This document shows positions 21,095-52,027 of a stretch of 64,000 nt of DNA, one piece after another. The notes below the pieces were generated by a model. That model did not search any database and was not told the origin of the DNA. It saw only the letters and a program-made list of their open reading frames with translations. Position 1 is the first letter of the stretch. The number at the start of each line of letters is the position of its first letter. Location of the stretch: the sequence record OQ411014.1; one strand, given 5' to 3'. Both the position numbers and the translations under genes were made by a program.

Positions 21095-21462
21095 CGAATA
21101 TCTATAACAAAACACCAAGCAATAAAAACCTTGATGCAGAAGCAGAACAGATGTATGATACAATGAACAATGTGAAGAAAGAAAAATCACAATCACCAAT
21201 TGTAAAGAGTGTTGGTCGCGTAACTGAGATAACTTTAGGTGATTCGAAGTTTTCAGTGCATGATCCAGTACGGATTGAAAATATCATCAAGTTAGCAGAG
21301 AAGCACGAATCCAGCATTACGCAAATTCGTCAATCTATTCGGTCAACGAATCTGGTTATAAAACAACTTCAACAGAGAGTTGGTTCGTTGGAATCTGAAC
21401 TGAAAGCTATAAAGGACAAATTGAACAATGGATATCAAAACGGATACGGCAGTTCATTATAA
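21091..21462 (+). CDS. Hypothetical coiled-coil protein
   Basis: Overlapping start/stop with neighbours; C-terminal heptads. Confidence 0.65.
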   Translation: MTNIYNKTPSNKNLDAEAEQMYDTMNNVKKEKSQSPIVKSVGRVTEITLGDSKFSVHDPVRIENIIKLAEKHESSITQIRQSIRSTNLVIKQLQQRVGSLESELKAIKDKLNNGYQNGYGSSL

Positions 21463-22072
21463 GAAAGCACGAACAGATATTGACATTGACTTTAAAGATG
21501 CTAAGTCTGTTATCGCACAATTGCCGTGTATTAGAAGTACTGAAAAGATTACTGAAGATGGATTGATGGTTCATAATAGTGGTGTTCATTTTGATAACAT
21601 ACCATTTGATCCTGTGAGTGGGTTAGCTAGTATTCAATACAAAGAAGCAGAAAGGTTAGGATATCAAAAGGTCGATATTCTATCACAATCTGCTTATGTA
21701 CACGTTCGAGACAGAGAACATTTGAAAGAGCTAATGGCACGCGAGCCTGATTGGGGGTTATTACTTGAACCTGAGATTGTAAACGAACTCTCACAAATCA
21801 AGAAGCACCTCACATTGCTAACCGTATGGAAACCTTCTTCCATTGATGAATTAGCTATGTTCCTTGCAATGATTCGCCCTGGTAAAAGGAAGTGTCAAAG
21901 TATGAATAGTTGGGATGAAGTAAAAGGGACTGTTTGGGATTATAGTACAATTGAGTTGAACGGTGAAGGTAAGAAACTACCATACTTCAAGAAGCCCCAT
22001 GCTTATGCATACAGCTTGATGATTGTAGTCCAACTAAATGCTCTAGTTGAGCATCTTATTTCTTCTTCTTGA
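21428..22072 (+). CDS. DnaE (Pol III alpha)-like catalytic fragment, C-terminal half of a split minimal enzyme
   Basis: TDIDIDF, HNSGV, GYQKVDIL, LAMIRPG, FKKPHAYAY match DnaE PDFDVDF, HAGGV, GLVKFDFL, VALFRPG, FNKSHSAAY. Confidence 0.85.
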   Translation: MDIKTDTAVHYKKARTDIDIDFKDAKSVIAQLPCIRSTEKITEDGLMVHNSGVHFDNIPFDPVSGLASIQYKEAERLGYQKVDILSQSAYVHVRDREHLKELMAREPDWGLLLEPEIVNELSQIKKHLTLLTVWKPSSIDELAMFLAMIRPGKRKCQSMNSWDEVKGTVWDYSTIELNGEGKKLPYFKKPHAYAYSLMIVVQLNALVEHLISSS

Positions 22073-22409
22073 GAGCAACATTCCGACGCTTGATACGTTT
22101 TGTAGGGATATTACTGAGAGAGATAACTGGTCCAGAAACAAAGTTTATGGTATCGGTATTAAATCTCTTAGTGTATCCTTCAAAAATTTCCATTTCTTCA
22201 CGTAAGAAAATACATACTGGAATAGAACGATTGCTTTGTTCCCACCAGTATTTTGCAAGACTAAGAAGTTCTTCTTGCTGAGACTCATCCATCATCTGGA
22301 AACAATACATAGTACTGTACTGTTTGCTTTTGATTTTGATGATTCCGTAGTAAGTGATACCGTCATGCTCAAGTACGGTCACGTAAGGGTAAGTTTTGTG
22401 ATTGTTCAT
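22056..22409 (-). CDS. Conserved hypothetical protein with basic C-terminus
   Basis: YYGII, WWEQSNRSIP..IFL, KRIKRR; TATAAATA box upstream on minus strand. Confidence 0.75.
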   Translation of the reverse strand: MNNHKTYPYVTVLEHDGITYYGIIKIKSKQYSTMYCFQMMDESQQEELLSLAKYWWEQSNRSIPVCIFLREEMEIFEGYTKRFNTDTINFVSGPVISLSNIPTKRIKRRNVALKKKK

Positions 22410-22417
22410 AGCACTTC

Positions 22418-22452
22418 CATAAATATTATATAATTAATACAAAGTATTTATA
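22418..22452. promoter_or_regulatory. Two oppositely oriented late-type boxes (CATAAATA on +, TATAAATA on -)
   Basis: 22418-22425 on plus and 22445-22452 on minus, in a 53-bp gap between divergent genes. Confidence 0.55.
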
Positions 22453-22462
22453 GGGAAAAATA

Positions 22463-23434
22463 ATGGCACATCATGGCTTATATATGTATCCGTGGAACAA
22501 CGAAGTATCATTAGGCAACTTCAACATGCCTTACAATAATGAGAATATCGTAATTTATCGCGGTGCTAACAACACATTGTCCTTCACTGTACATAACGCT
22601 GATGGAAAATACACCTTACTTAAAGATAACCAGTACTTAGTGTTCAGTATCTTTGATGCAAGAAATAACACTAAAATATTTGATACTACTTTGGAAAAAG
22701 TACAACCATCTTGGGTTTCTGAATCTGGACAAGCCAGACAAACTCTAGGTAATAAGAAAAAAGTTTACTACGGATGTTTAGTACCAGCAGGTGTCATACA
22801 AGATTTGAGTCCTGGTTCGAAGTACCGCTGGAGTATCATCAAAGTAACTATGGATGGATCTTTAATTGAACCAACTGAATACTTGTACACTGGTTTGGAT
22901 TATGAAGCTAGTGCTGAGTTGATTGTAAAAGACACTGCATCCCCTGCATTTGTTCCATCACAAGAGATTAGTGACAAACATAATTCCAGTTGGCTACCAA
23001 TCAAACACCCAGAGCGTGAACCTATTGCGAATGGTATCAAAGGTGATTTTGAAGTTCTTCATTCATCATCTATTCGTGCAGGTTGCCAATATGGTCTAGT
23101 TGAAGGATTGAGTACTATTGCCTTTTACTTTAAAAATTTCGTAGGTAGAATCCAGCTACAAGGTTGCTTGGCTAACAATAGCCCAATGGATTCTGAAAAC
23201 TACAAATGGTTCATCATTAAGTTAGATGACAAAGAGTACATTGAAAGTGGATTCGATGAGAATGGAATACCAAAAACAATTGATGGAATTCAACCATTTA
23301 ACTTCCGTGGTAACTTCATGTGGTTGCGGGTTGTGTGTGTCATACCACCAGTAGTTAGAAACTATCCACCTAATGAAGTAGTGAAGTTGTACGAACCACT
23401 GTTAACCGTTCCTAAAATTTTAATTCGACGATAA
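22463..23434 (+). CDS. Putative virion structural protein (beta-rich)
   Basis: IYRGANNTLSFTV N-terminus, late-type box upstream; no enzyme motif. Confidence 0.6.
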   Translation: MAHHGLYMYPWNNEVSLGNFNMPYNNENIVIYRGANNTLSFTVHNADGKYTLLKDNQYLVFSIFDARNNTKIFDTTLEKVQPSWVSESGQARQTLGNKKKVYYGCLVPAGVIQDLSPGSKYRWSIIKVTMDGSLIEPTEYLYTGLDYEASAELIVKDTASPAFVPSQEISDKHNSSWLPIKHPEREPIANGIKGDFEVLHSSSIRAGCQYGLVEGLSTIAFYFKNFVGRIQLQGCLANNSPMDSENYKWFIIKLDDKEYIESGFDENGIPKTIDGIQPFNFRGNFMWLRVVCVIPPVVRNYPPNEVVKLYEPLLTVPKILIRR

Positions 23435-23464
23435 TTGAGACATAATGGAAAAGTGTGATATAAT
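23435..23464 (+). promoter_or_regulatory. Middle-type promoter TTGAGACA-N11-TGTGATATAAT
   Basis: Spaced motif upstream of primase. Confidence 0.78.
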
Positions 23465-23492
23465 CGTTGATACGAAACATGAGGATAGCACA

Positions 23493-24539
23493 ATGAATCC
23501 AGTACAAATTATTATGGCGACAGTCATGAATGATCCAGTACCAGCATTAGGGGTCTGGAAGTCATACAACTGTCCAGCATGTGTTTATCGTGGTCAGTCC
23601 AGACCGGATGTTCGTCATCGCGGTAATCACATGTTTACGAACGAAGGTTCTGTAATCTACAACTGTTATAACTGTCACTTAAAGACAGGTTGGAGTCCTG
23701 GAAAATATATGAGCAAAGATATGGCATCTTTGCTCTCTTATTTTGGGATATCCCAGAAATCACAAACCGAACTTGACTTTTATATAAAAGAGATGGTTGA
23801 AAGTGGTGATTTCAATCAACAAGAAGAAACAGCAGCACAACGCTTATATCAGCGTATAACGAAACGAGAGTTTCCAAAAGGTACTAAGTCTTTCTTAGAT
23901 TGGGTGAATGAAGAAACAATCCCAAATGAGTTTCTTAGTGTCTTGAATGAAGTAAATGGAAGAAACCCGTACTTACTCGATTTGGATTTATATTGGAGTC
24001 CGTCGAAAGAGAACCGGATGTATGACAGATTTATTATTCCATATTACATGAACGGTCAGCTTGTCGGCTATACTGCTCGACATAAAGATTTGTCCAGTTC
24101 AATGAGATATGTGAACCATGTTAGTACTTCATTGTTGTATAACTTTGATTTACTGAACGATCCAAATATCAAAACAGTACTAGTAGCTGAAGGGCCAATA
24201 GATGCAGCATTGATGGGAGGTGTTTCAGCTAACAACTACTATCTTGGTGCAGCCCAAATTGAAGTACTATTGGCAGCGAAAGAACGAGGAAAACGTATTG
24301 TAATAGTTCCAGACCGAGATAAGGATGGTCTAGTTACAATAGAACAAGCGATAGAGTTAGGATTCTCTGTATCATTCCCTGATTATGGAACAGTACGAGA
24401 TTCTAAAGGTATCAGATATATAAAAGATTTCGATGAAGCATGTGCAAAGTACGGACGATTATTTTGCATTCAAATGATTCACTCCAGTATCGTGGATGAA
24501 GCATTCTATATTCGAGCACAGTCAGACAAATGGATTTGA
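23493..24539 (+). CDS. DNA primase (gp61/DnaG-like)
   Basis: Zinc-binding CPAC...CYNC, IIPY..G..VGYTAR, TOPRIM EGPIDA and DRDKDG; start moved to ATG 23493 (GAGG RBS, downstream of promoter). Confidence 0.88.
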   Translation: MNPVQIIMATVMNDPVPALGVWKSYNCPACVYRGQSRPDVRHRGNHMFTNEGSVIYNCYNCHLKTGWSPGKYMSKDMASLLSYFGISQKSQTELDFYIKEMVESGDFNQQEETAAQRLYQRITKREFPKGTKSFLDWVNEETIPNEFLSVLNEVNGRNPYLLDLDLYWSPSKENRMYDRFIIPYYMNGQLVGYTARHKDLSSSMRYVNHVSTSLLYNFDLLNDPNIKTVLVAEGPIDAALMGGVSANNYYLGAAQIEVLLAAKERGKRIVIVPDRDKDGLVTIEQAIELGFSVSFPDYGTVRDSKGIRYIKDFDEACAKYGRLFCIQMIHSSIVDEAFYIRAQSDKWI

Positions 24540-24550
24540 GGAAATAATAA

Positions 24551-26092
24551 ATGGTAAACACGGATGTAACCCAGTACAGTATTCAAGCACAAGAACGCCT
24601 ACTAGCAAAGATTCTTAGTAACCCAGAGTTGTATGTTCGTTGTAAAAACATTCTTCGTCCTGAGTACTTTGATAACGTATTCCGTAATAGTATTGAGTTC
24701 GTGAATGAATACGCAGTAAAATATAGTGAACTACCACCACTTGACGATATCAACTTCAAAGGTGGTATGGAATACAAACAAACTCCAGTATCAGATTTGC
24801 ACCAACAATCAGTACTGGACGATATCTCTGCATTCTGTCGTCATAAAGCACTAGCTTTGGCTGTACAGAAAGGAATGGAATTAGTACACCAAAAGAAATA
24901 TGGTGGTATTGAAGAACTAATTCGTGAAGCAATGCTAGTATCAGTACAGAACGAGTTAGGTCTGGACATTTACGAAGACCCAACATCTGTAATCAAATCA
25001 CTAGCTGATATGCAAGGTTCTTTCAAGAGTGGTTGGGATACTCTTGACTATAAATTATTTGGTGGCTTCGGTCGTCAAGAACTTGAAATCTTTGCAGCAG
25101 CATCTGGTGGTGGTAAGTCTGTAGTACTACAAAACTTAGCTGTGAACTTCTCCAAGTCAGGACTAAATGGTGCGTACATTTCTCTTGAACTTGCAAAAGA
25201 ACTTGTCGCTGTACGTATCTATGGTATGCTTATTGACAAGAAACAGCAGGAAGTAAAAACTGATATTGATAACACAGCACTACAGGTAAAGATTGAAGAG
25301 AAGACTAACGGTATGTTACGTATCCACCGTCTTCCAGAATCTGTCAGTACTACAAACGATATTGAAAGTTATCTACGTGAACTCCAGATCAAAACTGGTG
25401 TAAAACTAGATTACGTATGTGTGGACTACCTTGATCTACTAACATCTGACCGTTGTACTGCTCAAGATAAATCTAACGCATTCGTGAAAGATAAGTTCGT
25501 ATCGGAAGAACTACGTGCATTAGCAATGAAAATGGACATTACTGTTTTCACCGCTTGTCAGTTCAACCGTGATGGTGTAAAAGGTGAAGACAAGAAATCT
25601 TCTTCACAAATCGCTGGTGGTATTTCCAAAATCTATACTGCGGATAACGTAATCTTTATTGATGGTCGTAAAGACGTAGGTGAAATGTGGTTTGACTTCC
25701 AAAAAACTCGTAACAGTTCAGCAGTAGGTTCCCGTCTACGTATGTCTTATAACATGGATTCACTTCGTGTTCTTGACCATGCAATGACCGTTGAACAAAT
25801 GCAACAAGAAACATCATTCCAGCATAGTGGTAAAGTACGTATTGGTGGTGGTAATGTTTTATCTTCTCCATCTGCCCCGACTGCAATCCAACAATTGCAT
25901 AATTCTATGAAGAATGTAGTTCGTCCTCTTCAAGCACCTACCAGTACTGAAGAAGTTGTAGAAAGTACCGTTTCAGAAAGTACTACCGGTACTAATGAAC
26001 CTGCATATGCAAATACTGCACTAAATACTTCAAATACACCTTCCAATGGTCGTGTTGATAATATGAGGAAATTCTTACAGAATAGGAAATAA
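24551..26092 (+). CDS. Replicative DNA helicase (gp41/DnaB-like)
   Basis: Walker A ASGGGKS, SLEL, VDYLDL, TACQFNR, KTRNS; long low-complexity C-tail. Confidence 0.93.
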   Translation: MVNTDVTQYSIQAQERLLAKILSNPELYVRCKNILRPEYFDNVFRNSIEFVNEYAVKYSELPPLDDINFKGGMEYKQTPVSDLHQQSVLDDISAFCRHKALALAVQKGMELVHQKKYGGIEELIREAMLVSVQNELGLDIYEDPTSVIKSLADMQGSFKSGWDTLDYKLFGGFGRQELEIFAAASGGGKSVVLQNLAVNFSKSGLNGAYISLELAKELVAVRIYGMLIDKKQQEVKTDIDNTALQVKIEEKTNGMLRIHRLPESVSTTNDIESYLRELQIKTGVKLDYVCVDYLDLLTSDRCTAQDKSNAFVKDKFVSEELRALAMKMDITVFTACQFNRDGVKGEDKKSSSQIAGGISKIYTADNVIFIDGRKDVGEMWFDFQKTRNSSAVGSRLRMSYNMDSLRVLDHAMTVEQMQQETSFQHSGKVRIGGGNVLSSPSAPTAIQQLHNSMKNVVRPLQAPTSTEEVVESTVSESTTGTNEPAYANTALNTSNTPSNGRVDNMRKFLQNRK

Positions 26093-26095
26093 AAG

Positions 26096-26362
26096 ATGTC
26101 CGGTAAACATAACCTACTTGATAGTATTATAAATTATGCTCCCGTAAAGGAAGATTTATATACTTTTAGTAATAGAGCCGATCACGCAATCAATGCTGTG
26201 ATAAATCTAATGGAAAGTATCGAATCAGATTTCAGTCCTGACGAAGCTGAAGATTTGAAAAAGCGTCTTTTCCTTAGTATCAAAAACCGCGACTATCGGA
26301 AGTTTCAACGTGGGCTAGAGAATATAGCCCTCAATGAAAAACGAAATTCAAGGGGCGAATAA
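26096..26362 (+). CDS. Hypothetical protein
   Basis: 88-aa ORF coupled to next gene. Confidence 0.7.
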   Translation: MSGKHNLLDSIINYAPVKEDLYTFSNRADHAINAVINLMESIESDFSPDEAEDLKKRLFLSIKNRDYRKFQRGLENIALNEKRNSRGE

Positions 26363-26544
26363 TGTCAAAGAAAACTAAAAAATTGAAAGAGAATGCTTCT
26401 GCTGGTGCAACATCAGCAGGTGCAATCGCATCGGTTCCTACTGGTCTACATTACTCAATTCTAATGCGTATCCCAAAGAGTGATTTCTTCGGGTATTCTG
26501 AAGTTGATGAAACAGGTAAGAAAAAGACTAAAAAAGGAAAGTAA
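26362..26544 (+). CDS. Small basic hypothetical protein (LKE-NASAGATSAG)
   Basis: Coupled ORF; basic termini. Confidence 0.6.
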   Translation: MSKKTKKLKENASAGATSAGAIASVPTGLHYSILMRIPKSDFFGYSEVDETGKKKTKKGK

Positions 26545-26943
26545 ATGAAAGCCTACACATTCTATACAATACATACAGTTGTAGATATTGGTGATGGTAG
26601 TACTGCTACAATTGTGGACGGTAAGTTTACTGGTGCTATGAATTTGTCACGAATAGTTGAAGCCGTAATGGTTTACGACTATCCGATGATGGTAAGTGTT
26701 GTTCGGGATGAAGTTGATCTATCCAAAAGCAATAATAGTGAATTTTATGATTTACCTTCCTCATGGGGTAAATGTATTGTCAGTACTTTCAAATTCACTA
26801 TTCCAATGAACGTCACCATCAATCTAACTGGGATACCATTAGTATTACCATCAATAGTAAATGGTACACGTATTACTAAATTCAACGCAGCGTTGAGTAC
26901 GCGTAATATTAGTATTAGTAAACAGACACTTTGGTCTGCCTGA
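26545..26943 (+). CDS. Hypothetical protein, possible distant relative of the 5584-6821 pair
   Basis: NLSRIVEAV segment resembles NMKRVIDVV. Confidence 0.6.
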   Translation: MKAYTFYTIHTVVDIGDGSTATIVDGKFTGAMNLSRIVEAVMVYDYPMMVSVVRDEVDLSKSNNSEFYDLPSSWGKCIVSTFKFTIPMNVTINLTGIPLVLPSIVNGTRITKFNAALSTRNISISKQTLWSA

Positions 26944-26986
26944 TAAATAATCAGGAATAAGAACACAGATTTCTTTTGGAGAGAAT

Positions 26987-27958
26987 ATGGACATACAACA
27001 AACTGCCGAACAACTGCAAAAATTCGCAGATGCACATGGCCTGAACATGGATTGTTCAGTACTACTAGATCAGATGGACTCTGGTGATTTCATTGAACTC
27101 AATGGGGCAATTGACAACTCTGATAACCATTCTATTATGCAGATTCTGCAAAAATACAAAGCACGCTTGAGTGAGAGCTATGGTTACTTTACTGGGAATA
27201 TCCTAGTTGAATCTTATGGCTTGAATTTCATCAACTCATTGAGCTATAATTCTCTTGAGAAATTTTTCAAAGAGAACGTATCTTTTGCAATGCATGATAA
27301 TAGTCATTTGACGATTGCAGAAATGAAAACAATTGCATATGATCATGCAAACATTGATAACGTTTCTGTGTTTATGGAAGATAATAACCCACAAGCACAA
27401 CTTACTGCTAACATTATTGCTAATGCAAACACTCGCCAACAACAAACGCAAGTGAACCCACAAACGCAAGCAAAAATGAAACAAGCTGAGTTACAACGTA
27501 ACTCCGGTAACAACGCAATGAAAGTTACTGTACCAGGTAATCAGTCTGGTACTAACAACGTAGCAACTCTTGTTGGTGTTGATCCAGGACCAACTGAACA
27601 GCAGACGTTGGTGGTAACTAAAGATCCTCAAAAACAAAACCAAGTAAATGTTTATGGTTTGGATGACGTGAATCCTGTAGACCAACAAGGTCAAATCAAC
27701 ATGACTGAAGAGTATTCTCCACAAGAGATCAATCAAGATGTTATGGCTCCAAGCGGTGCACACCCTGAGAGTGGTGGGCCATCCCCACTAACAGTTACTG
27801 AACCTGGTATTGGTGGTATCATTCAAGCTATTGCACATATCGAGTCCGAAGATAATATTCATGGTGATGAAAGCCCAATGGGTAATCAATCAATGAATGA
27901 TGAGAACGATATTATTGCACAAATCATTGATAACTGTTCTAAGATGCGAGGCCGCTAA
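26987..27958 (+). CDS. Hypothetical Q/N-rich late protein
   Basis: GATAAATA box at 26942, GGAG RBS. Confidence 0.7.
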   Translation: MDIQQTAEQLQKFADAHGLNMDCSVLLDQMDSGDFIELNGAIDNSDNHSIMQILQKYKARLSESYGYFTGNILVESYGLNFINSLSYNSLEKFFKENVSFAMHDNSHLTIAEMKTIAYDHANIDNVSVFMEDNNPQAQLTANIIANANTRQQQTQVNPQTQAKMKQAELQRNSGNNAMKVTVPGNQSGTNNVATLVGVDPGPTEQQTLVVTKDPQKQNQVNVYGLDDVNPVDQQGQINMTEEYSPQEINQDVMAPSGAHPESGGPSPLTVTEPGIGGIIQAIAHIESEDNIHGDESPMGNQSMNDENDIIAQIIDNCSKMRGR

Positions 27959-28188
27959 TGAGAATGACCACGAATATCTATGGTCACTCAGTAATGGTAT
28001 CAAATGAAGAATATTCAGTATTGAAAAAAATCAAAGAGCGTGGTAAGATCCCCGCTCTCAAGATTCAAGAATATTACAGAACTGTAGCAGACAAATTGGT
28101 TTCTCGTGGAGTACTAAATAAAGTTCACGAGGATGGAAAGGATTTCTATGAACCAATAGGGAGTGAAGATGAAAGACAGCACAAGTGA
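27958..28188 (+). CDS. Small hypothetical protein (winged-helix-like pattern)
   Basis: Coupled ORF; ADKLVSRGVL..V pattern. Confidence 0.6.
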   Translation: MRMTTNIYGHSVMVSNEEYSVLKKIKERGKIPALKIQEYYRTVADKLVSRGVLNKVHEDGKDFYEPIGSEDERQHK

Positions 28189-28891
28189 TTTTATGGAAGG
28201 AATGCTATCGTCTTTGAATGATATTGAAGATGGTATCCAACCACAATCTCGACCACAACAAAATTACAATCACAATCAGAACCCAAATCAAGGTTTTGAT
28301 GTATATGCGGCACAAGCCGAATCTGCTGCTCGTGCACTCAATGAAACTAAAAACCTCTTAGAAGGTCTAACTGACATTGGGTTTGAATATGGAAATATCA
28401 ACAATCCAGACGCAGAAGCACAATCACAGCGTGCACCAACATATTCTGAATCACCAAGTACTTATGCACAACCAGTGTATAATGAACCAAAAATCCAGAA
28501 GCCATCGCGTCACTGGAGCTTAGTTGAGAATATTTTACAAGGTACTAAGAGTACTAAAGTATACAGTATAAAATGTAATTACAGTAACGAAGTACTAATG
28601 GATGGCATGTTGATGTTTGAATCATCCCAAACGTTAGTAAACTTACTCAATGAAGGACGTAATCTTTCGGACATAAAAGTACTAGGGATTATAAGTTCTG
28701 GTATACAGTACAGTACTGTTGTTATGGAAACACTTCGCAATGTGAAGAAACGCCAAAAAGTACTAAACGAATCACAGTATGATGTAGCCAAAGATCTTGA
28801 TGTGGTTATTTCAGAGAAGAAGAATGAAGCCAAACAACTAAGAAATCGTGTAATCAAATTTTTAGTTGACGAAGGATACATAACTAAATAA
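28163..28891 (+). CDS. Hypothetical protein
   Basis: 242-aa ORF, phage codon usage. Confidence 0.7.
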   Translation: MKMKDSTSDFMEGMLSSLNDIEDGIQPQSRPQQNYNHNQNPNQGFDVYAAQAESAARALNETKNLLEGLTDIGFEYGNINNPDAEAQSQRAPTYSESPSTYAQPVYNEPKIQKPSRHWSLVENILQGTKSTKVYSIKCNYSNEVLMDGMLMFESSQTLVNLLNEGRNLSDIKVLGIISSGIQYSTVVMETLRNVKKRQKVLNESQYDVAKDLDVVISEKKNEAKQLRNRVIKFLVDEGYITK

Positions 28892-28924
28892 AATAGGAAT
28901 TGACTATTATAAGGAAATATACAA

Positions 28925-29554
28925 ATGTCTAAGAATTTTTCTAAATTGATGGAAACTGCTAACAAAGGTGAAGCAATGTCTTACATTCGTCTAAACGAAT
29001 CTAACATTGAGAAAGCTGAAATTGTTCTAGCAGTCAAAGGCGAGATTGTTGACAAGCTACAACGTCAAGCTGAAGTAATCAACAACATGGGCGTGGACGT
29101 ATTAGGCCCACTACTAGATCGTATCAAAGCTGAACATGGTCTTGAATCTGCTGAAAGTTTCCGTAACAACATCAGCGGCCTATTAGAGCACGCAGTAAAA
29201 ACTCTAATGGATGTAAAAGATAAGATCAGTACTGAAACTCTAAAACTAACTGGTGATATTACCAATGAACCTAGTATCAGTGAACTAGGTGCAGGTGCAG
29301 ATGAAATGTCTCTTGACATGCAAACTCCAGAGTTTGACTTTGAAGCAGATGCAGATTTTGAAGATATTGATGTTGAACCAACTCCAGCAGAACGTGAAAT
29401 GAAAGAATCCGTTCAACCTAAACGTATCGGTATTGAGATTGAAAGTAAGTCCGGTGTTGTAGGTCGCAAGTTCTTCGAGAGCAAGCAATCTATGAAAACT
29501 TGGCTAACTGAAAACGAACACAAAATCAAACGCGTTATTGGTATGGTAAAATAA
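28925..29554 (+). CDS. Hypothetical helical protein, possible prohead core/scaffold
   Basis: AATAAATA box at 28887, AAGGA RBS, several LxE motifs. Confidence 0.6.
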   Translation: MSKNFSKLMETANKGEAMSYIRLNESNIEKAEIVLAVKGEIVDKLQRQAEVINNMGVDVLGPLLDRIKAEHGLESAESFRNNISGLLEHAVKTLMDVKDKISTETLKLTGDITNEPSISELGAGADEMSLDMQTPEFDFEADADFEDIDVEPTPAEREMKESVQPKRIGIEIESKSGVVGRKFFESKQSMKTWLTENEHKIKRVIGMVK

Positions 29555-29563
29555 GGATACAGG

Positions 29564-29890
29564 ATGAAATTCAGTGAACTAACTGAAGTCGCTCCTGAGA
29601 AGAATATCCAAAGTATGATCATGACCACTGCACTATCTTTAGTTGCAACTGGTCGTGAAGAAGTGAAACTACAATCACTAATTGGTGAAATCAAAAAGCG
29701 TACTAACATTGATGTTCCATACAACGTTATGGTTGACATTCTTAGTAACCTACCTTTTGTAACTGATGTAAATAGTGATGTAGTTACCTTCGGTGGTGAG
29801 GATACCAGTACTGATGCCCCTGAAGAGGATTCAGCAGATATCGTTGCTGATATGGCATCAAAAGCGGCGTCAAGTAATTTGAAGCAATAA
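29564..29890 (+). CDS. Hypothetical acidic protein
   Basis: AGGA RBS; 108 aa. Confidence 0.7.
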   Translation: MKFSELTEVAPEKNIQSMIMTTALSLVATGREEVKLQSLIGEIKKRTNIDVPYNVMVDILSNLPFVTDVNSDVVTFGGEDTSTDAPEEDSADIVADMASKAASSNLKQ

Positions 29891-29891
29891 A

Positions 29892-29921
29892 TTGAGACAG
29901 ATTTACATAATGTGATATAAT
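29892..29921 (+). promoter_or_regulatory. Middle-type promoter TTGAGACA-N11-TGTGATATAAT
   Basis: Spaced motif. Confidence 0.78.
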
Positions 29922-29933
29922 AGGAGTACAAGG

Positions 29934-39384: not shown

Positions 39385-40309
<925 letters not shown>

Positions 40310-42322: not shown

Positions 42323-42346
42323 TTTATTACACAGGAGCTATTGACA

Positions 42347-42538: not shown

Positions 42539-42563
42539 CAGTTAGAAAGAAAGACATTATTAT
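42535..42563 (+). promoter_or_regulatory. Sigma70-type promoter TTGACA-N17-TATTAT
   Basis: Near-consensus, upstream of IF3 gene. Confidence 0.8.
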
Positions 42564-42642
42564 ACACACATGCACTACAAAGTGGGATGGAAAAGCTATC
42601 CCACTAAAAATTCAAAAACACTATCTGGAGATGTGAATTTAT

Positions 42643-43143: not shown

Positions 43144-43162
43144 TAAAAAGGATTGAGTTAGA

Positions 43163-43699
43163 ATGAAAAATGAAATCGAGCAACAGATTTTTCAAACGAA
43201 TCCTCTGCCAGTAGTAAAAACTACTTATAAGGATTCAGTATATTACGTCGCGGGTAAGCATGACCTTACTCGTTATGTCGAAAATGTTTCAGCGGCAAAG
43301 AGTGAAGAGTTTCGTGTTGAAGCAGCACTAAAACATCTCATCAATGATCGCCCTGAAGTGAATAAGTTGAATGTTCCAATGTTTGACTTTATTCTTCTCG
43401 ACGACCCAAAAACCACGGCAAACTTCGTTTCAATGTATTGCTATGATGTTCTACATTTTGATGATGACCGTTGTAACGAAGTAATTGAAGCACTGAATAC
43501 AGTAGGTTCTTACTATGTTGGTACTTACAGTGATGAACTCACTCTAACTCTAGCACACCTACTAGAAGAAGCTAACTCCCAACTGGACCAAAATCTAGGT
43601 TGGAATAAGATGGAACGTCAACCAGCAGATGATGCATTAGTTGATGCAATGGTTCTTCTAGAAAAACTAATCGAGCGTGATTACCCGCAAGATCTATAA
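43163..43699 (+). CDS. ClpS-like adaptor domain with N- and C-terminal extensions
   Basis: FILLDDPKTTANFV...LNTVGSYYVGTYS matches ClpS V.L.NDDYTPMEFV...VH..GKAICGVF. Confidence 0.7.
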   Translation: MKNEIEQQIFQTNPLPVVKTTYKDSVYYVAGKHDLTRYVENVSAAKSEEFRVEAALKHLINDRPEVNKLNVPMFDFILLDDPKTTANFVSMYCYDVLHFDDDRCNEVIEALNTVGSYYVGTYSDELTLTLAHLLEEANSQLDQNLGWNKMERQPADDALVDAMVLLEKLIERDYPQDL

Positions 43700-43707
43700 C
43701 AATAACT

Positions 43708-45234
<1,527 letters not shown>

Positions 45235-45240
45235 ATATCA

Positions 45241-45270
45241 GGGAGCGTCTATGACGTTCCCAATTTTTTT
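45241..45270 (+). terminator. Intrinsic terminator
   Basis: GGGAGCGTC-N3-GACGTTCCC then T run. Confidence 0.7.
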
Positions 45271-45298
45271 GAGATAACCAAATTATTTGTGATATAAT
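45269..45298 (+). promoter_or_regulatory. Middle-type promoter TTGAGATA-N11-TGTGATATAAT
   Basis: Spaced motif upstream of topoisomerase. Confidence 0.78.
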
Positions 45299-45333
45299 AC
45301 AGAAGCTAAGAGACAACATAAAGGAAAATACAA

Positions 45334-47304
45334 ATGGCAAAGAAACAATCATCTGTCATGGAAGAACATGGAATCCAACAACTAACCGAATATGAACACG
45401 CCCGAATCAGGACAGAAATGTATCTTGGTTCACGTTCTGTGCATGAACAGATGGCTCTTATCTTTGGTGAAACAGGCTATGCAGTACTGAACACTGCTTG
45501 GGTTCCAGCACTACTAACATCTATTCGTGAAGTTCTTGATAACTCCCTTGACGAATTCGTGAAAGCAATGGTGAAAGACCCTGAACTACGCGTGACGTAT
45601 GATGAAGGAACTCTAAGCATCGTGGTTTCCGACAACGGTCGCGGTATTCCAATTGACTACGTACCAGATACGCAAAAGAACTTGTGTACTATGGTAATGA
45701 CTGAAATGAAAACTGGTCGTAACTTCAATGATGACGAACGTGAAAACGTCATTGGTATGAACGGTCTTGGTGGTTCAGTTGTAATGATTGTTAGTGAAAC
45801 TGCTGAACTGGAAATCCATCGTGCTGGTCGTCCATACAAAACCACAAGCAGTAATGATGGTTATGATGGAATGTACAAATTTACACAGAAATTCAGCGAA
45901 GGAACTCACATGTTCCCTGACCTACAAATCAATGAACCAACGATTCGTAAAGTCAAAGCTGATAAGACTGGTACTACAATTCGTTTCAAACTAAGCCCAG
46001 CAGTATTCCCGAACCTAGTACTACCAACTGAACTAATCTATAGTATCCTAAAAGAGATTAGTGCTGCGAACCCTACCTACAAAATCTTCCTGAACGACAA
46101 ACGTATTCAGTCTAAAGGTGGAGTAGAGAAAGGTCTATTTGGTAAAGCTAAACTAATGACCCTAAGTGTGAAAGACCCAGGCTTTGACAGTACTTTTTAC
46201 ATCGTTCCTGATTCAGTAGAAGGACAAAGTACTAATTTCCACATGCATGGTCTAGTAAACAACGCCCCAGCGTTAGAAGGTGGCACTCACCTAGAAACAT
46301 TCAAGAAGTTCTTTGCATTAGGTATTGGGACTTCTCTTGAGAAAGAAGCTAAGCGTCGTAAAGTAAAACTAAAACCCAACCGTTCTGATATTGAAGAAGG
46401 TCTATTGATTTACAATATCACACGTATGAACTCTCCATCGTTCAACTCACAGACTAAGACTAAACTAACGAATGAAAATGTTATTCGTCCTGTACAGCAA
46501 GCTATGAGTACTGAATGGTTTGATGAGTTAGTGAAGAAAAATAAGGAGTGGGTGGATTCAATCTTTACTCGTTGTGCTGAACGTACGAACAAGAAAGATG
46601 CAGATGAAGATCGTCGTCTAGCAAAGAAACTACTAAAAGGTAAAGTAGCTAAACTCCGTGATGCAACTGGTACTGACCGTTCCAAATGTATCCTACTAAT
46701 CGCAGAAGGTGATTCCGCAATTAGTAACATGTCCGGTGCTCGTGATTCTGCGATTCATGGTATTCTTCCGTTGCGTGGTAAAATCATGAACGTGAACGGT
46801 ACTGAGAAAACTAAAGATCTAATGGATAGTGATTCTCTACGTGACATTATGGCATCAATCAACCTAATCCCAGGACAAAAAGCTGTACGTTCAGAACTGA
46901 ACTATGGTAAGCTATATATCTGTGCGGATGAGGATGAGGATGGTAAGAACATTGGTGCACTAGTGTGTAACTTCCTATTCAAATTCTGGCCTGAACTATT
47001 CCAAGACCCAGAAAATCCGTTTGTTTACATCTTCAAAACTCCATTTATTATTTTGGAGAAAGGTAAAGAAAGTCGTTATTTCTATGGTCATAACGTGCAT
47101 GAATTCAACCCTGACGAATGGAAAGGATGGAAAGCAACTCGTGCAAAAGGACTAGGAACACTAGAGAAATCCAACTTCCGTGATGCACTAACCGATGGCG
47201 TAGCAATCGCAATCACTGATGACGGTAACTTAGGTGCAACATTAGACCTCATCTTCAATAAAGGTCGTTCCGATGACCGTAAAGAATGGATGAAGGACGA
47301 GTAA
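45334..47304 (+). CDS. Type IIA topoisomerase ATPase/TOPRIM subunit (gp39+gp60 fused, GyrB/ParE-like)
   Basis: EVLDNSLDE, DNGRGIP, GMNGLGG, EGDSA, PLRGKIMN, DEDEDG, KGLG. Confidence 0.96.
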   Translation: MAKKQSSVMEEHGIQQLTEYEHARIRTEMYLGSRSVHEQMALIFGETGYAVLNTAWVPALLTSIREVLDNSLDEFVKAMVKDPELRVTYDEGTLSIVVSDNGRGIPIDYVPDTQKNLCTMVMTEMKTGRNFNDDERENVIGMNGLGGSVVMIVSETAELEIHRAGRPYKTTSSNDGYDGMYKFTQKFSEGTHMFPDLQINEPTIRKVKADKTGTTIRFKLSPAVFPNLVLPTELIYSILKEISAANPTYKIFLNDKRIQSKGGVEKGLFGKAKLMTLSVKDPGFDSTFYIVPDSVEGQSTNFHMHGLVNNAPALEGGTHLETFKKFFALGIGTSLEKEAKRRKVKLKPNRSDIEEGLLIYNITRMNSPSFNSQTKTKLTNENVIRPVQQAMSTEWFDELVKKNKEWVDSIFTRCAERTNKKDADEDRRLAKKLLKGKVAKLRDATGTDRSKCILLIAEGDSAISNMSGARDSAIHGILPLRGKIMNVNGTEKTKDLMDSDSLRDIMASINLIPGQKAVRSELNYGKLYICADEDEDGKNIGALVCNFLFKFWPELFQDPENPFVYIFKTPFIILEKGKESRYFYGHNVHEFNPDEWKGWKATRAKGLGTLEKSNFRDALTDGVAIAITDDGNLGATLDLIFNKGRSDDRKEWMKDE

Positions 47305-47377
47305 TTCAGTACTGAACTGTGAGGGGTAAATATCCCTCACAACAGATAGGATATCAAGAAACAAAGAGGCAAAGGAT

Positions 47378-48781
47378 ATGGCTAAAAAGCAAAACGAGAG
47401 TATTTCTAACGCAACCCTAACACTACTGGACTATGTGAGTTCAGAGTACATCAACCAATCATCACTGGAATATGCAATCAGTACTCTAGACCGTGCAATT
47501 CCAGGTATTGATGGACTAAAAGCATCACAACGTAAAGCAATCTTCACTATCAGTAAAGTTAGTGGTGAAATCAAAACTGTATCAGCAGCAGGACGTATGA
47601 TCAGTGATGGCATTTATCTACACGGTGACGCATCTGCATCTGGTACTTTACAGAACCTAGCATCACCAGTAGTGAATAACTACCCACTAATTGGCAAACG
47701 TGGTGGTTTCGGGAACCAAGCGAACCCTGAGCCAGCAAGTGCACGTTATACATATGTAAAGAAAACCAAAGTCACTGAAGCTCTAGTACTGCGTGATATG
47801 GATGTAGTTCCAATGCAAGAGAACTACGATGGTACAACTATGGAACCACGTCACTTCTTACCTATTATTCCTTTGTGTCTATTCGGTAACGATAGTATGT
47901 CTGTAGGTTACAAAAGTATTATTATGCCGTACAAATTAGAAGATATTATTGACAACTGTATTCGAGTAATTGACAATAAGAAGTTAGTTGATATGATGCC
48001 GTACTATGTAAGTGTAGGTGCATCACCGAACGTAACTAAACTTGAAGAACTAAAGTACGAGTTCTATGGTAAAGCTGAAGTTATCGATGCAAGTACTGTA
48101 CGTATCACTGGTTTACCTCCTTATCGTAAGCTAGAAACTTTCGTTGAGAAACTAATCTCTATGTCCGATGATGGTTCTATTCGTGATTATGACGATAACA
48201 GTACTGACTTAGTGAACATTACAGTGAAGCTCCCACGTGGTACTTCTGCAAAATGGACTGAAAAAGATGTAATTGAATATTTTGGCCTATCCAAGAAAGT
48301 AACTGAAAAACTAAACGTTCTAGGTGAAAATGGATTGGTCAAATCGTACACCAATACTTTGGACATTATTCGTGACTTCGTTGATTTCCGTTTCAAGTAC
48401 TATGTAAAACGTTATGAGAAGAAACTGGAAGCAGCAGCCGCAGAAGTTCGATACAAAGCTCTAGTACAGGAATGTTTCCATAATGATATGATTGGTAAAA
48501 TCAAAGGCTTCCAGAACCGTGCTGAACTAGTTGCATTCGTTGAATCACTAAACACTGAAATTGAAGCATCTGATGAAAACATTCAGAGCATTGTGAACTA
48601 TCCATCTTACCGTTGGACTCAAGAGAACTATCAGAAAGTTCTTGAAGAAATCCAACACGCTTTAGGTCTAATGGATGAGTACAATGATTTACTTTCCAAT
48701 CACGATAAGATTTGGGCGATTTACAAAAATGAACTACTAGAACTACGGGCTATGGACTGCACTCCTAAGTCAGAGGACTAA
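47378..48781 (+). CDS. Type IIA topoisomerase breakage-reunion subunit (gp52, GyrA/ParC-like)
   Basis: IDGLKASQRK, YLHGD, ASARYT active-site Tyr, EP..LPIIP. Confidence 0.95.
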   Translation: MAKKQNESISNATLTLLDYVSSEYINQSSLEYAISTLDRAIPGIDGLKASQRKAIFTISKVSGEIKTVSAAGRMISDGIYLHGDASASGTLQNLASPVVNNYPLIGKRGGFGNQANPEPASARYTYVKKTKVTEALVLRDMDVVPMQENYDGTTMEPRHFLPIIPLCLFGNDSMSVGYKSIIMPYKLEDIIDNCIRVIDNKKLVDMMPYYVSVGASPNVTKLEELKYEFYGKAEVIDASTVRITGLPPYRKLETFVEKLISMSDDGSIRDYDDNSTDLVNITVKLPRGTSAKWTEKDVIEYFGLSKKVTEKLNVLGENGLVKSYTNTLDIIRDFVDFRFKYYVKRYEKKLEAAAAEVRYKALVQECFHNDMIGKIKGFQNRAELVAFVESLNTEIEASDENIQSIVNYPSYRWTQENYQKVLEEIQHALGLMDEYNDLLSNHDKIWAIYKNELLELRAMDCTPKSED

Positions 48782-48787
48782 TACACT

Positions 48788-48810
48788 AAAGGACGCACTA
48801 TGCGTCCTTT
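48788..48810 (+). terminator. Probable terminator hairpin
   Basis: AAAGGACGCA-N3-TGCGTCCTTT. Confidence 0.65.
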
Positions 48811-48815
48811 GTTAT

Positions 48816-48823
48816 TATAAATA
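48816..48823 (+). promoter_or_regulatory. T4-type late promoter TATAAATA
   Basis: Perfect T4 late consensus upstream of 48855. Confidence 0.65.
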
Positions 48824-48854
48824 CTCCGTAGCTTTTAATTAATTGGAGAAACAT

Positions 48855-51236
48855 ATGGCACAATTCATACCACGTTGGGATTTGAAGGCTGACACAAATA
48901 TTATTACTGAAGGTGGTACTACCTATGTGCGTATAAACATCAACAGGGATAAAATTAGTGATCCTTCATTATATGAGATTGAAGATAATCAATATTTAGA
49001 ATTAACATACCGCATTACTGGTACAGGTGAAACATTAGAAGAACGAGATTTTGAGTTATCAGTAGGTGAAGATTTAAATAATTTAAAGCCAATCAGTGAA
49101 ACCAGCACTTATCGTAATATGTTAGGAACACACACTGTTAAATTGGATACCAAATCATTCGAATTGGGAAATAATCTCTCAAAAACAGCTTATTACTTGA
49201 AACTTTATTGCGTAGTTGATGGTGTGTGGGATGGTCCTGAAACATTAGAATTCATTCTAGACACAATGAACATTGTCACTATTACCGAAGGACAAATTTC
49301 AAATGAAGAAGCGTCGGGTAGTATTGGTACAAATACGGCTAAGATTGCATACAATGACAGTACTGAAATATGGGTAACACCATCACTAACAGTACGTGAT
49401 GAAATGTACAGTATTTGTGAAATGCACTATGGTTCGAATAGTCGTGCTTTCGTACAAGCATTTGGTAGATGTAAACCTTACTCTGGTCCTATTGTAGAAG
49501 ATTCATCTAATCGTGTATTCTATCCTATGTATCAAATGGTAAATCTAGCACCGTCAGCAATACCCAGCACTAACAGGACTGGTCATGGTACAGTACTGAA
49601 TCCTGATCCTACTGCAACATTCCCACCTAGTGGTGAAGAAATGCCAGTGGTAATTCGGGATGAGTTAGGGAACAACATTGAAACTGGTTTGAGCTTAAAT
49701 GGTAATGGTCAATTACTCGGAACCTTTCTCTACGATTCTGATCCAATAGATGGTTACTTTAGAGTTAAAATTGTTGCACCAACTGCATATTATACAACTG
49801 AGCGTGATGCATTTTATATCGGTAAGCGTTTTAAAGCGTATCAAATGTGGGTATGTCCACAAGATACATCTTACATCAAAGGTTCACCAACACCAGGCCA
49901 CCTTTACCAATTAAAGAACACTGTAATTTATCCTTATGTTATCAAGGACTTCACGGAGAACTCAATTCACTATCCAATCTTTGAAGAAAATGACTGGATT
50001 GATTTGGGATATTATGATGTGAGTTTGGGTTCTGGTATTATTGGACAAGAAAGAACTTTCCGTATGATTATCAATGGTAACACCGGAGATGGCATTAGTT
50101 TTATCACTGATACTGATTTAGGTTCCATCCATGTGGGTGAGTATTTTGGTCACACGGTATATCCGTCGATTCAAGCCTCTGGTACATTAGTAACTTATAA
50201 GATTCTTGAATCATCAAGAGATGACATTACTAAGTACAACATTGATTTAACCGCAGATGGGATTATGGTCGGTACTGCTTATGCACAAAGTACTGATTTT
50301 AGTGCTAATGACGAAATACACTTAGAGTTTGATGTACAAGCAACAGACAAGAGTGGTGCTAGTGTAACTGCAACATTCAAGATTAGAATTACCCGTGGCT
50401 TCGGTCAGAACTTCCTAAGTGCATTTGTAAAACCACATATGCCATTTGAACGTAAGTGGTTTAAAATGATCAGTACTTCTAATTTTGTGAACCAAGAGTA
50501 CTATAGAACATCTGATGATCGTTATGGGTTACAGAAGTTTCCTAAGATGCTATTGAAAGAGAACTTTGTCAGTACTACTTATATGTACGAATCATTACAA
50601 GCAATGAAGAATACATTACGAGATAACTTAGTGAAGCCTGATACTGGAGCACCAGTACCGACAGGGACGTTTGGTTTTAGTTTAGGTAACTATAAAATTC
50701 GTTCAGCACTTGACAGTTTAGGCAACGTACTGTATGATGTACTATATCGTGAAATCCATCCTAAAGGTACTAGTGTTCCTATCTCTATGGAACCGTTGAA
50801 GTACACTACTCAAGACAATGGATTCTTGGCTGAGTTCTTTGGATTGCGTGAGAACATTGTCAGTACTGTAGGTGAAGACACCACGAACTTGCTATCTGAC
50901 CCGACTGATTTACAGAACCGTGGTTTGTATGTAGATGCAATTACTGGAATCTCGAAGGAAATGTTAGACACAGTTCCACGATACATGAACCATCCATATA
51001 CTGGTGATGGAGTTAAGGCTGGATTTTTGCCTGTAATTCCTGTAGCATACTTTAAGCCAGGTCAAGCTGAAGCATTCTTTAACACACTAATCCGTTCCAA
51101 TGAGTATCAGGAATTGGTGAATGAAGAGTTTGAGATTACATACGTTGAGTTCCAATACTTCTTTTTGCAGTACGCTAAATACGTTCAAGAGAACTATACT
51201 GTACAAATTAAAGAACAAAGTTTATTGGGAGGGTAA
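48855..51236 (+). CDS. Large virion structural protein (baseplate/tail-like, Ig/cadherin-type segment)
   Basis: Beta-rich, TDLGSIHVGEYF and DLTADG.MVGT segments; late promoter; GGAG RBS. Confidence 0.6.
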   Translation: MAQFIPRWDLKADTNIITEGGTTYVRININRDKISDPSLYEIEDNQYLELTYRITGTGETLEERDFELSVGEDLNNLKPISETSTYRNMLGTHTVKLDTKSFELGNNLSKTAYYLKLYCVVDGVWDGPETLEFILDTMNIVTITEGQISNEEASGSIGTNTAKIAYNDSTEIWVTPSLTVRDEMYSICEMHYGSNSRAFVQAFGRCKPYSGPIVEDSSNRVFYPMYQMVNLAPSAIPSTNRTGHGTVLNPDPTATFPPSGEEMPVVIRDELGNNIETGLSLNGNGQLLGTFLYDSDPIDGYFRVKIVAPTAYYTTERDAFYIGKRFKAYQMWVCPQDTSYIKGSPTPGHLYQLKNTVIYPYVIKDFTENSIHYPIFEENDWIDLGYYDVSLGSGIIGQERTFRMIINGNTGDGISFITDTDLGSIHVGEYFGHTVYPSIQASGTLVTYKILESSRDDITKYNIDLTADGIMVGTAYAQSTDFSANDEIHLEFDVQATDKSGASVTATFKIRITRGFGQNFLSAFVKPHMPFERKWFKMISTSNFVNQEYYRTSDDRYGLQKFPKMLLKENFVSTTYMYESLQAMKNTLRDNLVKPDTGAPVPTGTFGFSLGNYKIRSALDSLGNVLYDVLYREIHPKGTSVPISMEPLKYTTQDNGFLAEFFGLRENIVSTVGEDTTNLLSDPTDLQNRGLYVDAITGISKEMLDTVPRYMNHPYTGDGVKAGFLPVIPVAYFKPGQAEAFFNTLIRSNEYQELVNEEFEITYVEFQYFFLQYAKYVQENYTVQIKEQSLLGG

Positions 51237-51240
51237 TAGT

Positions 51241-51549
51241 ATGTTTAATCCATTTTTCAATCCACAAAACATGACTGACAAAGAACTTAATCAGAAAATC
51301 ATTGACATGAGCACTCGCATCACGAATGCTCGTGCTGGTGGTGCAAGTTCTGAAATTATTGGTAATATGTATGCAATCTTAGATGCGTGTGAAGAAGAAA
51401 ACTATATTCGTTATTCATCAAAAGAGGCTGAATCTTGGCGTGATGACGGTGCTTGTATGTTTGATCTAAATGACTACTTAGATTCAGAAGAGGATAATAA
51501 GAAACCACATGAAAGTTCAAGGAAACAGATCTATAAGCCAGGATGGTGA
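51241..51549 (+). CDS. Hypothetical protein
   Basis: Start ATG 51241 with GGAGG RBS. Confidence 0.7.
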   Translation: MFNPFFNPQNMTDKELNQKIIDMSTRITNARAGGASSEIIGNMYAILDACEEENYIRYSSKEAESWRDDGACMFDLNDYLDSEEDNKKPHESSRKQIYKPGW

Positions 51550-52027
51550 TGTACGTTGTAATCTTAACGCAGTAGTTTATGCTATGAACTGCGGTCAAGA
51601 CATACAGTACATTCAACTGGATGATATATCGGAATTTGAGCGAGAGAAGTTCAACACTAACTGTAAGAACTTCGGGTTATCCCAACGTATGCTGGATTAT
51701 ACTATAGAGCATGATAAGAACCATGAGCTATGGCGTTATGATCCAGTATACGACAAGATCAACTTGCTTGATTTTTTCTTAGAAAAGTGTACTACCGAAG
51801 AAGGTAGAGAACGTGTTCGATACGAAATTGGTTTGTACGAACACTACAACATGACCAAACTACTACGTTGTATGATTTGGTTAGTTGACTATATGGAAGA
51901 TAAAGAAATCTTCTGGGGATTAGGTCGTGGTAGCTCCGTTGCGAGTTATTGTCTATTCCTGTTAGGGTTGCATCTGGTGGATTCTGTGAAATATTCACTC
52001 GATGTGAACGAATTTTTGAAATGGTAA
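51509..52027 (+). CDS. DnaE (Pol III alpha)-like fragment, N-terminal half of the split minimal enzyme
   Basis: ERVRYEI...WGLGRGSSVASYCLFLLGLHLVDSVKYSLDVNEFLK matches DnaE ERLETEL...[36 protein letters not shown]. Confidence 0.85.
   Translation: MKVQGNRSISQDGDVRCNLNAVVYAMNCGQDIQYIQLDDISEFEREKFNTNCKNFGLSQRMLDYTIEHDKNHELWRYDPVYDKINLLDFFLEKCTTEEGRERVRYEIGLYEHYNMTKLLRCMIWLVDYMEDKEIFWGLGRGSSVASYCLFLLGLHLVDSVKYSLDVNEFLKW

Follow-up and report, generated by a model that had tools for sequence, protein, structure and literature searches.

A minimal Pol III alpha-type catalytic core encoded by two distant genes of the jumbo coliphage EJP2 and its probable role as a two-chain accessory polymerase

The Rak2-related jumbo coliphage EJP2 (OQ411014.1, 349,185 bp) divides one minimal catalytic core of Pol III alpha type between two genes that lie far apart on the plus strand. 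Both are contained in a stretch of 64,000 nucleotides of this record, referred to here as the window, whose base 1 corresponds to base 186,001 of the record. The open reading frame (ORF) at 51509..52027 (+), hereafter the N piece, codes for 172 residues equivalent to the N-terminal subdomain of the Pol III alpha palm and belongs to phrog_11127 (1.6e-80). The ORF at 21428..22072 (+), hereafter the C piece, codes for 214 residues that comprise the catalytic part of the palm followed by a shortened fingers region and belongs to phrog_11778 (1.7e-102). The two proteins add up to 386 amino acids and their genes are separated by 29.4 kb, which agrees well with an initial annotation, made from the nucleotide sequence of the window alone, that had proposed a minimal C-family core of about 390 residues split at one point into two genes 30 kb apart. 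That the two genes are halves of one such core is confirmed by the analyses described below, and they probably act as an obligate two-chain accessory polymerase of the phage replisome. The split arrangement is real but is already known as a computational discovery of 2021.

The start codon of each piece lies inside the 3' end of the preceding ORF of the same strand, and both genes are therefore embedded in runs of plus-strand genes. The 29 kb that separate them in EJP2 encode a virion protein, a primase, DnaB, both ribonucleotide reductase subunits, a Dda-like helicase and topoisomerase II. Both pieces are referred to as 'hypothetical protein' in the GenBank record of EJP2 and are not mentioned in the EJP2 genome paper. 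In RefSeq and PHROGs each of them carries the label 'DNA polymerase', in keeping with the earlier remark that such fragments are annotated in related phages. Older records (GAP32, Erwinia pEa_SNUABM, Salmonella 7t3) label the C piece as 'putative membrane protein', which is a misannotation in view of its fold and motifs.

Relationship of the two pieces to Pol III alpha

The N piece is recognised by the Pfam family DNA_pol3_alpha (PF07733) with a score of 33.2 bits, above the Pfam cut-off of 23.9, its residues 92-171 corresponding to positions 16-95 of the 260 positions of the profile. When a profile made from 26 relatives of the N piece was compared with the PDB, the nine best matches were all Pol III alpha (E = 0.003-0.013), the profile spanning residues 336-406 of Mycobacterium tuberculosis DnaE1 and residues 320-392 of Escherichia coli Pol III alpha. 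The six best PDB matches of the C-piece profile (24 relatives) are likewise all Pol III alpha, with a best E-value of 0.017, and the alignment runs through four collinear blocks from M. tuberculosis residue 413 on. The D-I-D-I-D motif of the C piece is equivalent to residues 413-424 of M. tuberculosis DnaE1 and to the D-x-D segment of the E. coli enzyme (chain residues 402-421). It is followed by K81-x-D83, equivalent to the L-K-M-D block near M. tuberculosis residue 580, by R-P-G near residue 660 and by F-K-K-x-H-A, which corresponds to F-N-K-S-H-A at 773-788. The two pieces match adjacent and collinear segments of Pol III alpha and are therefore consecutive parts of one domain, as had been proposed at the outset from the almost gapless fit of the two halves. 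A search of the PDB with the single C-piece sequence returned dynein, which was rejected as a chance hit; Pol III alpha emerged only with the family profile.

The fold of the two pieces has been compared with known structures using AlphaFold2 models, which have a mean predicted local distance difference test score (pLDDT) of 92.8 for the C piece and 82.0 for the N piece. The top 12 Foldseek matches of each piece in the PDB are all Pol III alpha, with probabilities up to 1.00 and query TM-scores of 0.33-0.48. PolC appears at ranks 15-16 in the list of the N piece, and the remaining matches of both pieces are noise. Among viral structures (BFVD), the best matches of the C-piece model are phage DnaE-type polymerases of 569-1329 residues. 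In PHROGs the N piece weakly matches phrog_405 and phrog_11165 (782 residues). No single strong score underlies the assignment of the two pieces to Pol III alpha; it is supported by the convergence of Pfam, of two profile and two fold searches and of collinearity.

The BFVD matches of the C-piece model also include a range of shortened contiguous phage DnaE-type polymerases, for example of 569, 738-830 and 374 residues, which are intermediate between the full-length enzyme and the minimal split form.

Motifs retained and domains lost

The C piece carries the D-I-D-I-D motif at residues 17-21, with D17, D19 and D21, followed by K81-x-D83 and by the finger motifs R150-P151-G and F-K-K-x-H191-A, the three catalytic aspartates being those of D-x-D and K-x-D. 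The triphosphate-binding loop G-x-G-R-G-S-S is found at residues 137-143 of the N piece. Residues 1-90 of the latter matched no family and contain two conserved positions, N49 and W75. All near-full-length members of the two families that could be retrieved were aligned, comprising 231 C pieces, 27-100 % identical to that of EJP2, and 89 N pieces. D17, D19, K81, D83 and P151 are identical in 231/231 C pieces, while D21 is retained in 224, R150 in 229 and H191 in 228 of them. The three catalytic aspartates reported as intact in the initial annotation (DIDID and KVD) are present and invariant among the members aligned. Seven residues of the N piece (G137, G139, R140, G141, S142, S143 and S146) are identical in all 89 sequences.

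Comparison of EJP2 with Pectobacterium phage CBB gives proportions of nonsynonymous (pN) and synonymous (pS) differences of 0.13 and 0.82 for the C piece and of 0.16 and 0.70 for the N piece, pS being saturated in both. The examination of dN/dS that had been recommended earlier reveals strong constraint, and for the ratio itself only a bound can be given, as synonymous sites have reached saturation between EJP2 and those relatives that have been sequenced. In the comparison with CBB both pieces are as constrained as DnaB and the clamp loader, or more so. Both genes are under strong purifying selection. The invariance of these residues, taken together with the selection, therefore makes decay, chance or a purely structural role very unlikely.

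Much of the bacterial enzyme has no counterpart in the two pieces. The D-x-D and K-x-D motifs are 62 residues apart in the C piece as against about 150 in E. coli Pol III alpha, and in the C-piece model this stretch is a beta-hairpin that takes the place of the thumb domain. The R-P-G and F-K-K-x-H-A motifs are spaced by 38 residues, compared with about 115 in Pol III alpha. The C piece stops about 25 residues past F-K-K-x-H-A, a point from which Pol III alpha goes on for about 400 residues. The NCBIfam DnaE models score only 14-54 bits against cut-offs of 434-1806. These spacings and scores therefore define a minimal core of palm and proximal fingers and not a DnaE orthologue. A Pfam scan of both pieces revealed no match to PHP (PF02811), OB-fold, intein or Hint families at E <= 1. 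The features by which full-length DnaE and PolC are recognised are thus lacking, namely the PHP domain, the complete thumb, the distal fingers, the beta-binding domain, the OB fold and the C-terminal tail; the loss of most of the thumb and of the PHP, OB-fold and tail regions had been read correctly from the sequence in the first place.

The break is located inside the palm, between the triphosphate-binding subdomain and the first catalytic strand. In all members the N pieces stop right after ...EFLK and the C pieces begin 0-16 residues before D-x-D. The N piece of EJP2 ends one residue beyond this break point common to the family, and its C piece has about 15 residues ahead of the D-x-D strand, often 0-5 in relatives. 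There is no extra sequence at either side of the break and therefore no room for intein halves, which would occupy about 100 residues behind the N extein and about 35 ahead of the C extein, in accordance with the absence of split-intein motifs noted earlier.

Distribution and co-occurrence

By tblastn, 94 phage records contain the N piece and 96 the C piece, and the tallies of the two pieces (N/C) match in the individual genera: Escherichia 34/34, Pseudomonas 11/11, Klebsiella 10/11, Salmonella 8/8, Erwinia 8/8, Xanthomonas 4/4 and Yersinia 4/4. The co-occurrence across relatives that the initial annotation had called for is therefore borne out, and both pieces are present in Atu_ph07 and in the Rak2-like phages. 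Identity to the EJP2 proteins falls in parallel for the N and C pieces, from 81/82 % in 121Q and 76/79 % in CBB to 58/62 % in XaC1 and about 30/39 % in Atu_ph07. The distance between the two genes varies widely, from about 4 kb in Ralstonia phage RsoM2USA, in which the N piece precedes the C piece, through 14 kb in Stenotrophomonas phage CM1 and 29 kb in EJP2, to 34 kb in CBB, 44 kb in PA5oct, 116 kb in SCTP-2, 182 kb in Atu_ph07 and 224 kb in Phosso.

The C piece also occurs in Alishewanella phage Slickus01 (OQ508957.1), the genome of which, at 141.6 kb, is well under jumbo size. In Escherichia phage CMSTMSU (MH494197.1) the C piece and a zinc-finger protein described below are each matched as three joined tblastn pieces, which implies two interruptions per gene in the sequence as deposited, due either to sequencing errors or to real breaks.

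Natural unsplit forms

An exhaustive search with the C-piece profile yielded 539 representatives at E <= 0.001. Among the best 150 of the 539, nearly all are stand-alone proteins of about 180-220 residues or shorter fragments, and two are longer contiguous proteins. One protein of 375 residues (P0271) matches the N-piece profile at residues 8-186 (hhalign probability 99.8 %, E = 3e-28) and the C-piece profile at residues 190-371. Two relatives of 376 residues from other samples (P0363 and P0364) are 78-81 % identical to it. A fourth contiguous form of 336 residues (P0352) is very divergent and has a shortened N part. In the unsplit relatives the halves are joined by a plain linker of about 10 residues. 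P0271 aligns with the DnaE model TIGR00594 in one stretch, its residues 92-206 corresponding to positions 302-417 of the model, and this stretch crosses the break point of EJP2. By the gene-fusion argument, the natural single-chain forms therefore indicate that the split halves work together, and the join between the two is confirmed. Matching tallies, parallel divergence, a shared break point and natural fusions indicate that the N and C pieces form one functional unit.

In a midpoint-rooted neighbour-joining tree of 160 C domains, calculated without bootstrap, the three forms of about 375 residues lie some 14 nodes deep among stand-alone C pieces, and P0352 is placed elsewhere. Tentatively, the contiguous state thus appears at two or more places within the split diversity, which may reflect either re-fusion or repeated splitting. 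The fused gene of locus L004 occupies the position of the C piece in split genomes, with a small reverse gene and then a struct323-like gene downstream. On an 8-kb contig of JGI 3300080032 (locus L003, the two genes together at 1516-4181), P0352 is encoded directly after, and overlapping, a gene for a 552-residue protein with a PF03090 'Replicase' domain and a helix-turn-helix motif. This context hints that the mini-polymerase may also serve small replicons outside the jumbo phages.

The unsplit forms are known from short contigs only (samples ERZ28653423, SRR16020819 and JGI 3300080032), and scans of IMG/VR with P0271 and P0352 and of one metagenome yielded no longer contig carrying them. Three loci of the metagenome scan were considered as carriers of an unsplit form and rejected, L015 being a stand-alone C piece and L016 and L017 ordinary DnaE genes of 1160 residues. 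The unsplit forms are new with respect to the published description of the split enzyme.

Gene neighbourhood

Each half is anchored in a conserved block of replisome genes of its own, which is also an addition to what has been published. The block of the C piece consists, in this order, of a C2H2-type zinc-finger protein, in some cases a small gene, the C piece, a small convergent gene, a virion protein, a DnaG-like primase and DnaB, and it is kept in EJP2, CBB, PA5oct, Atu_ph07, SCTP-2 and the metagenomic locus L010. The small convergent gene of EJP2 (22056..22409, minus strand, 117 residues, phrog_11637) shares 17 nucleotides with the 3' end of the C piece, which its counterparts also adjoin in CBB, PA5oct, Atu_ph07 and SCTP-2. 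The primase (23445-24539, +) has matches to Toprim and DNAG_N that remain below threshold and is annotated as a primase in CBB and PA5oct. It is followed by a DnaB-type helicase (24551-26092, +; DnaB_C 3.5e-18). The block of the N piece, kept in EJP2, CBB, PA5oct, Atu_ph07 and SCTP-2, continues downstream with a 125-residue protein (52077-52454, +), a GroES-like protein (52417-52779, +) and a clamp-loader subunit of gp44/RFC type (53124-54080, +) that has the Pfam domains DNA_pol3_delta2, AAA and Gp44_lid.

The presence of a family B DNA polymerase and a primase beside the two pieces, as stated in the initial annotation, has been verified. The former is encoded at 2-2350 (+; PF00136, 2.8e-23), in an ORF that may begin before the window, and is presumed to be the main replicase. 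Besides this polymerase, DnaB and the clamp loader, the window encodes a gp32-like protein, RecA/UvsX and a superfamily 2 (SF2) helicase.

The zinc-finger protein upstream of the C piece (20375..21094, +, 239 residues, phrog_11058) has a single N-terminal finger, which is unusual in phages. C16, C19, H32 and C34 are invariant, and the profile of the family matches classical C2H2 fingers over positions 14-33 only. Searches of Pfam, NCBIfam and the PDB revealed one classical C2H2 finger and nothing resembling the parts of Pol III alpha that are missing. This protein occurs in 91 phage records, its tallies by genus being those of both pieces, and it lies upstream of the C piece in 9/9 split loci examined. 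It abuts or overlaps the start of the C piece in PA5oct, L005/L006, L011 and L015, and in L005/L006 it stands beside the C piece although neither primase nor DnaB is encoded within 10 kb. It was not seen beside the unsplit forms, where the flanks are short. The ORF abutting the C piece in L005, L010 and L011 had been considered as an adjacent N piece, an identification that was rejected as it is the zinc-finger protein. These observations, which go beyond the published description, make the zinc-finger protein a candidate third subunit of the mini-polymerase or a candidate partner of the primase. A stand-alone zinc ribbon of primase type has been mentioned for these phages (Iyer et al. 2021, PMC7824862).

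Two other genes of the window may be recorded. An ORF of 878 residues (9164-11800, +) contains the ATPase domain of a T4-type large terminase at residues 422-626 together with homing-endonuclease domains (LAGLIDADG_3 and Hom_end) at residues 281-357, and may represent an intein or a homing-endonuclease fusion. The gene at 58805-59950 (+) encodes a phage protein of the TelA (toxic anion resistance) family (PF05816, 6e-37).

Proposed mode of action and alternative explanations

The N piece would contribute the helical subdomain whose G-R-G-S-S loop, in Pol III alpha, grips the incoming nucleotide by its triphosphate, and the C piece the strands bearing the three metal-binding aspartates together with the proximal finger motifs. 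Once translated, the two would come together without splicing to form an obligate heterodimeric nucleotidyl transferase with one active site. Since neither protein has a complete active site, the N and C pieces would have to associate, and an obligate heterodimer with one composite active site is accordingly very likely. The heterodimer may work alongside the family B polymerase, for instance by extending primers, by synthesising the lagging strand or in the course of repair, with the zinc-finger protein possibly supplying the nucleic-acid binding lost with the thumb and C-terminal domains. Given the position of each half within a conserved block of replisome genes and the retention of finger motifs specific to polymerases, we favour, on balance, a role as a template-dependent accessory DNA polymerase of the phage replisome.

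Several points weigh against this role. The family profiles match Pol III alpha with modest E-values (0.003-0.017). Most of what enables Pol III alpha to grip primer-template DNA and to act processively has been lost, namely the PHP and beta-binding domains, the OB fold, the distal fingers and the thumb, so that templated DNA synthesis is not assured. The gene order of T4-like and jumbo phages also retains unrelated genes, virion proteins included, and neighbourhood is therefore weak functional evidence. A literature search retrieved no functional, biochemical, structural or gene-level expression data on either piece, consistent with the initial annotation, whose author knew of no functional test. 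A more elaborate proposal is that of a three-part enzyme, in which the zinc-finger protein would be the nucleic-acid-binding subunit replacing the thumb and C-terminal domains, the whole being a dedicated primer-extension polymerase coupled to the primase-helicase and the clamp loader, and in which the single-chain core of 336-376 residues would act as the polymerase of small replicons. We advance it as a speculation that is rather unlikely to hold in full.

The same loss of nearly all the DNA-holding domains of Pol III alpha, in a phage that is already equipped with a family B polymerase, could point to a specialised nucleotidyl transferase engaged in untemplated addition, in the formation of a signalling or modified nucleotide or in the tailing of DNA or RNA ends, and the Pol-beta-like nucleotidyl transferase fold indeed includes many non-templated enzymes. 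The initial annotation had allowed for such non-templated or modified-nucleotide synthesis along with priming and repair. However, the R-P-G and F-x-K-x-H-A finger motifs are specific to Pol III alpha and nearly invariant, the fold matches only Pol III alpha and PolC with no other nucleotidyl transferase above noise, and the neighbouring genes are those of a primase, a helicase and a clamp loader and not of nucleotide modification or defence. The gene context thus favours a replisome role over non-templated synthesis, short of proof, and we regard a specialised transferase of this kind as the main alternative, but a doubtful one. It is improbable that the pieces are non-catalytic accessory or scaffold proteins of the replisome with a polymerase ancestry. 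Inactivated polymerase homologues are known as scaffolds in other families, but the retention of the aspartates, of the lysine of K-x-D and of the triphosphate loop in members down to 27 % identity is unexpected for a structural protein.

The small size of the pieces and the distance between them, and nothing more, might suggest decaying remnants of a captured dnaE gene or a single gene broken by an insertion or an assembly error, the latter having been raised as a possible artefact at the time of the initial annotation. Such an origin has practically no probability in view of an identical break point in hundreds of sequences, of the strong purifying selection and of the occurrence of the pair in about 95 independently sequenced genomes with the pieces 4 to 224 kb apart; in EJP2, moreover, the intervening 29 kb contain genes such as those of primase, DnaB and ribonucleotide reductase. 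The joining of the two products into one chain by a split intein is equally hard to credit. It has a precedent in dnaE of Synechocystis, which is encoded by two distant genes whose products are joined by protein trans-splicing. In the phage proteins, on the other hand, there is no room for intein halves at the break, no intein or Hint family is matched at E <= 1, and the halves of the unsplit relatives are connected by about 10 residues of plain linker.

If the accessory polymerase proposed here is active, it would be the smallest known C-family polymerase core, about one third of the size of Pol III alpha, with a natural active site divided between two polypeptides, and it would show which parts of the bacterial replicase catalysis truly needs. 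It would also mean that the replisome of these jumbo phages, a large and widespread group with several candidates for therapy, contains a second polymerase. Should the three-part arrangement be true, the single-chain forms of 336-376 residues would be the smallest C-family polymerase found in nature. Concrete handles on the mini-polymerase, both structural and comparative, are provided by its unsplit relatives and by the zinc-finger protein that shares its distribution.

Comparison with known systems

A split minimal Pol III alpha has been described in the group 2.2 jumbo phages by Iyer, Anantharaman, Krishnan, Burroughs & Aravind (2021, Viruses 13:63, PMC7824862). In that description an N-terminal NTP-binding unit and a C-terminal unit binding Mg2+ and the template are separate proteins encoded by distant genes, in addition to a family B polymerase, a gp32-type single-stranded DNA-binding protein, a UvsW-type helicase and a clamp loader and with no other Pol III domains, and Atu_ph07 and Rak2-like phages are named. 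The EJP2 pair is the same thing and differs in nothing essential; the window likewise holds a family B polymerase, a gp32-like protein, an SF2 helicase and a clamp loader, and the pair has no other Pol III domains. The authors suggested cooperation with the family B enzyme in the synthesis of one strand or in repair, and regard the split form as a model of the ancestral enzyme, which gives the pair a bearing on the origin of the C family. Neither the unsplit forms nor the zinc-finger neighbour nor the two blocks that anchor the pieces feature in their description.

With bacterial Pol III alpha/DnaE1 (E. coli 2hnh; T. aquaticus 2hpi, 3e0d and 4iqj; M. tuberculosis 5lew and 7pu7) the pieces share the Pol-beta-like palm and the three aspartates, and the G-R-G-S loop, R-P-G and the finger motif of F-N-K-S-H type follow in the same order. 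The phage pair has 386 residues in two chains, whereas the bacterial enzyme has about 900-1200 in one. Missing from the pair are the PHP and beta-binding domains, the OB fold, the distal fingers and the C-terminal tail, together with most of the thumb.

The split DnaE of cyanobacteria is likewise a C-family polymerase made from two far-apart genes. Its halves carry intein parts and are spliced to the full-length enzyme, whereas the phage pair has no intein and is broken at another position, inside the palm just before the catalytic strand.

The contiguous DnaE-type polymerases of phages, such as those of the group 3.2 jumbo phages (for example phage G), have the same fold and provide the best viral structural matches. 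They differ in being single chains that are far longer, usually possess a PHP domain and act as the main polymerase of the phage.

A functional analogy may finally be drawn with DnaE3, which accompanies PolC in Bacillus as a second C-family polymerase near the main replicase and is thought to extend primers. The likeness would be one of function only, as DnaE3 is a full-length enzyme that binds the clamp, and in EJP2 the place of the main replicase is taken by a family B polymerase instead.

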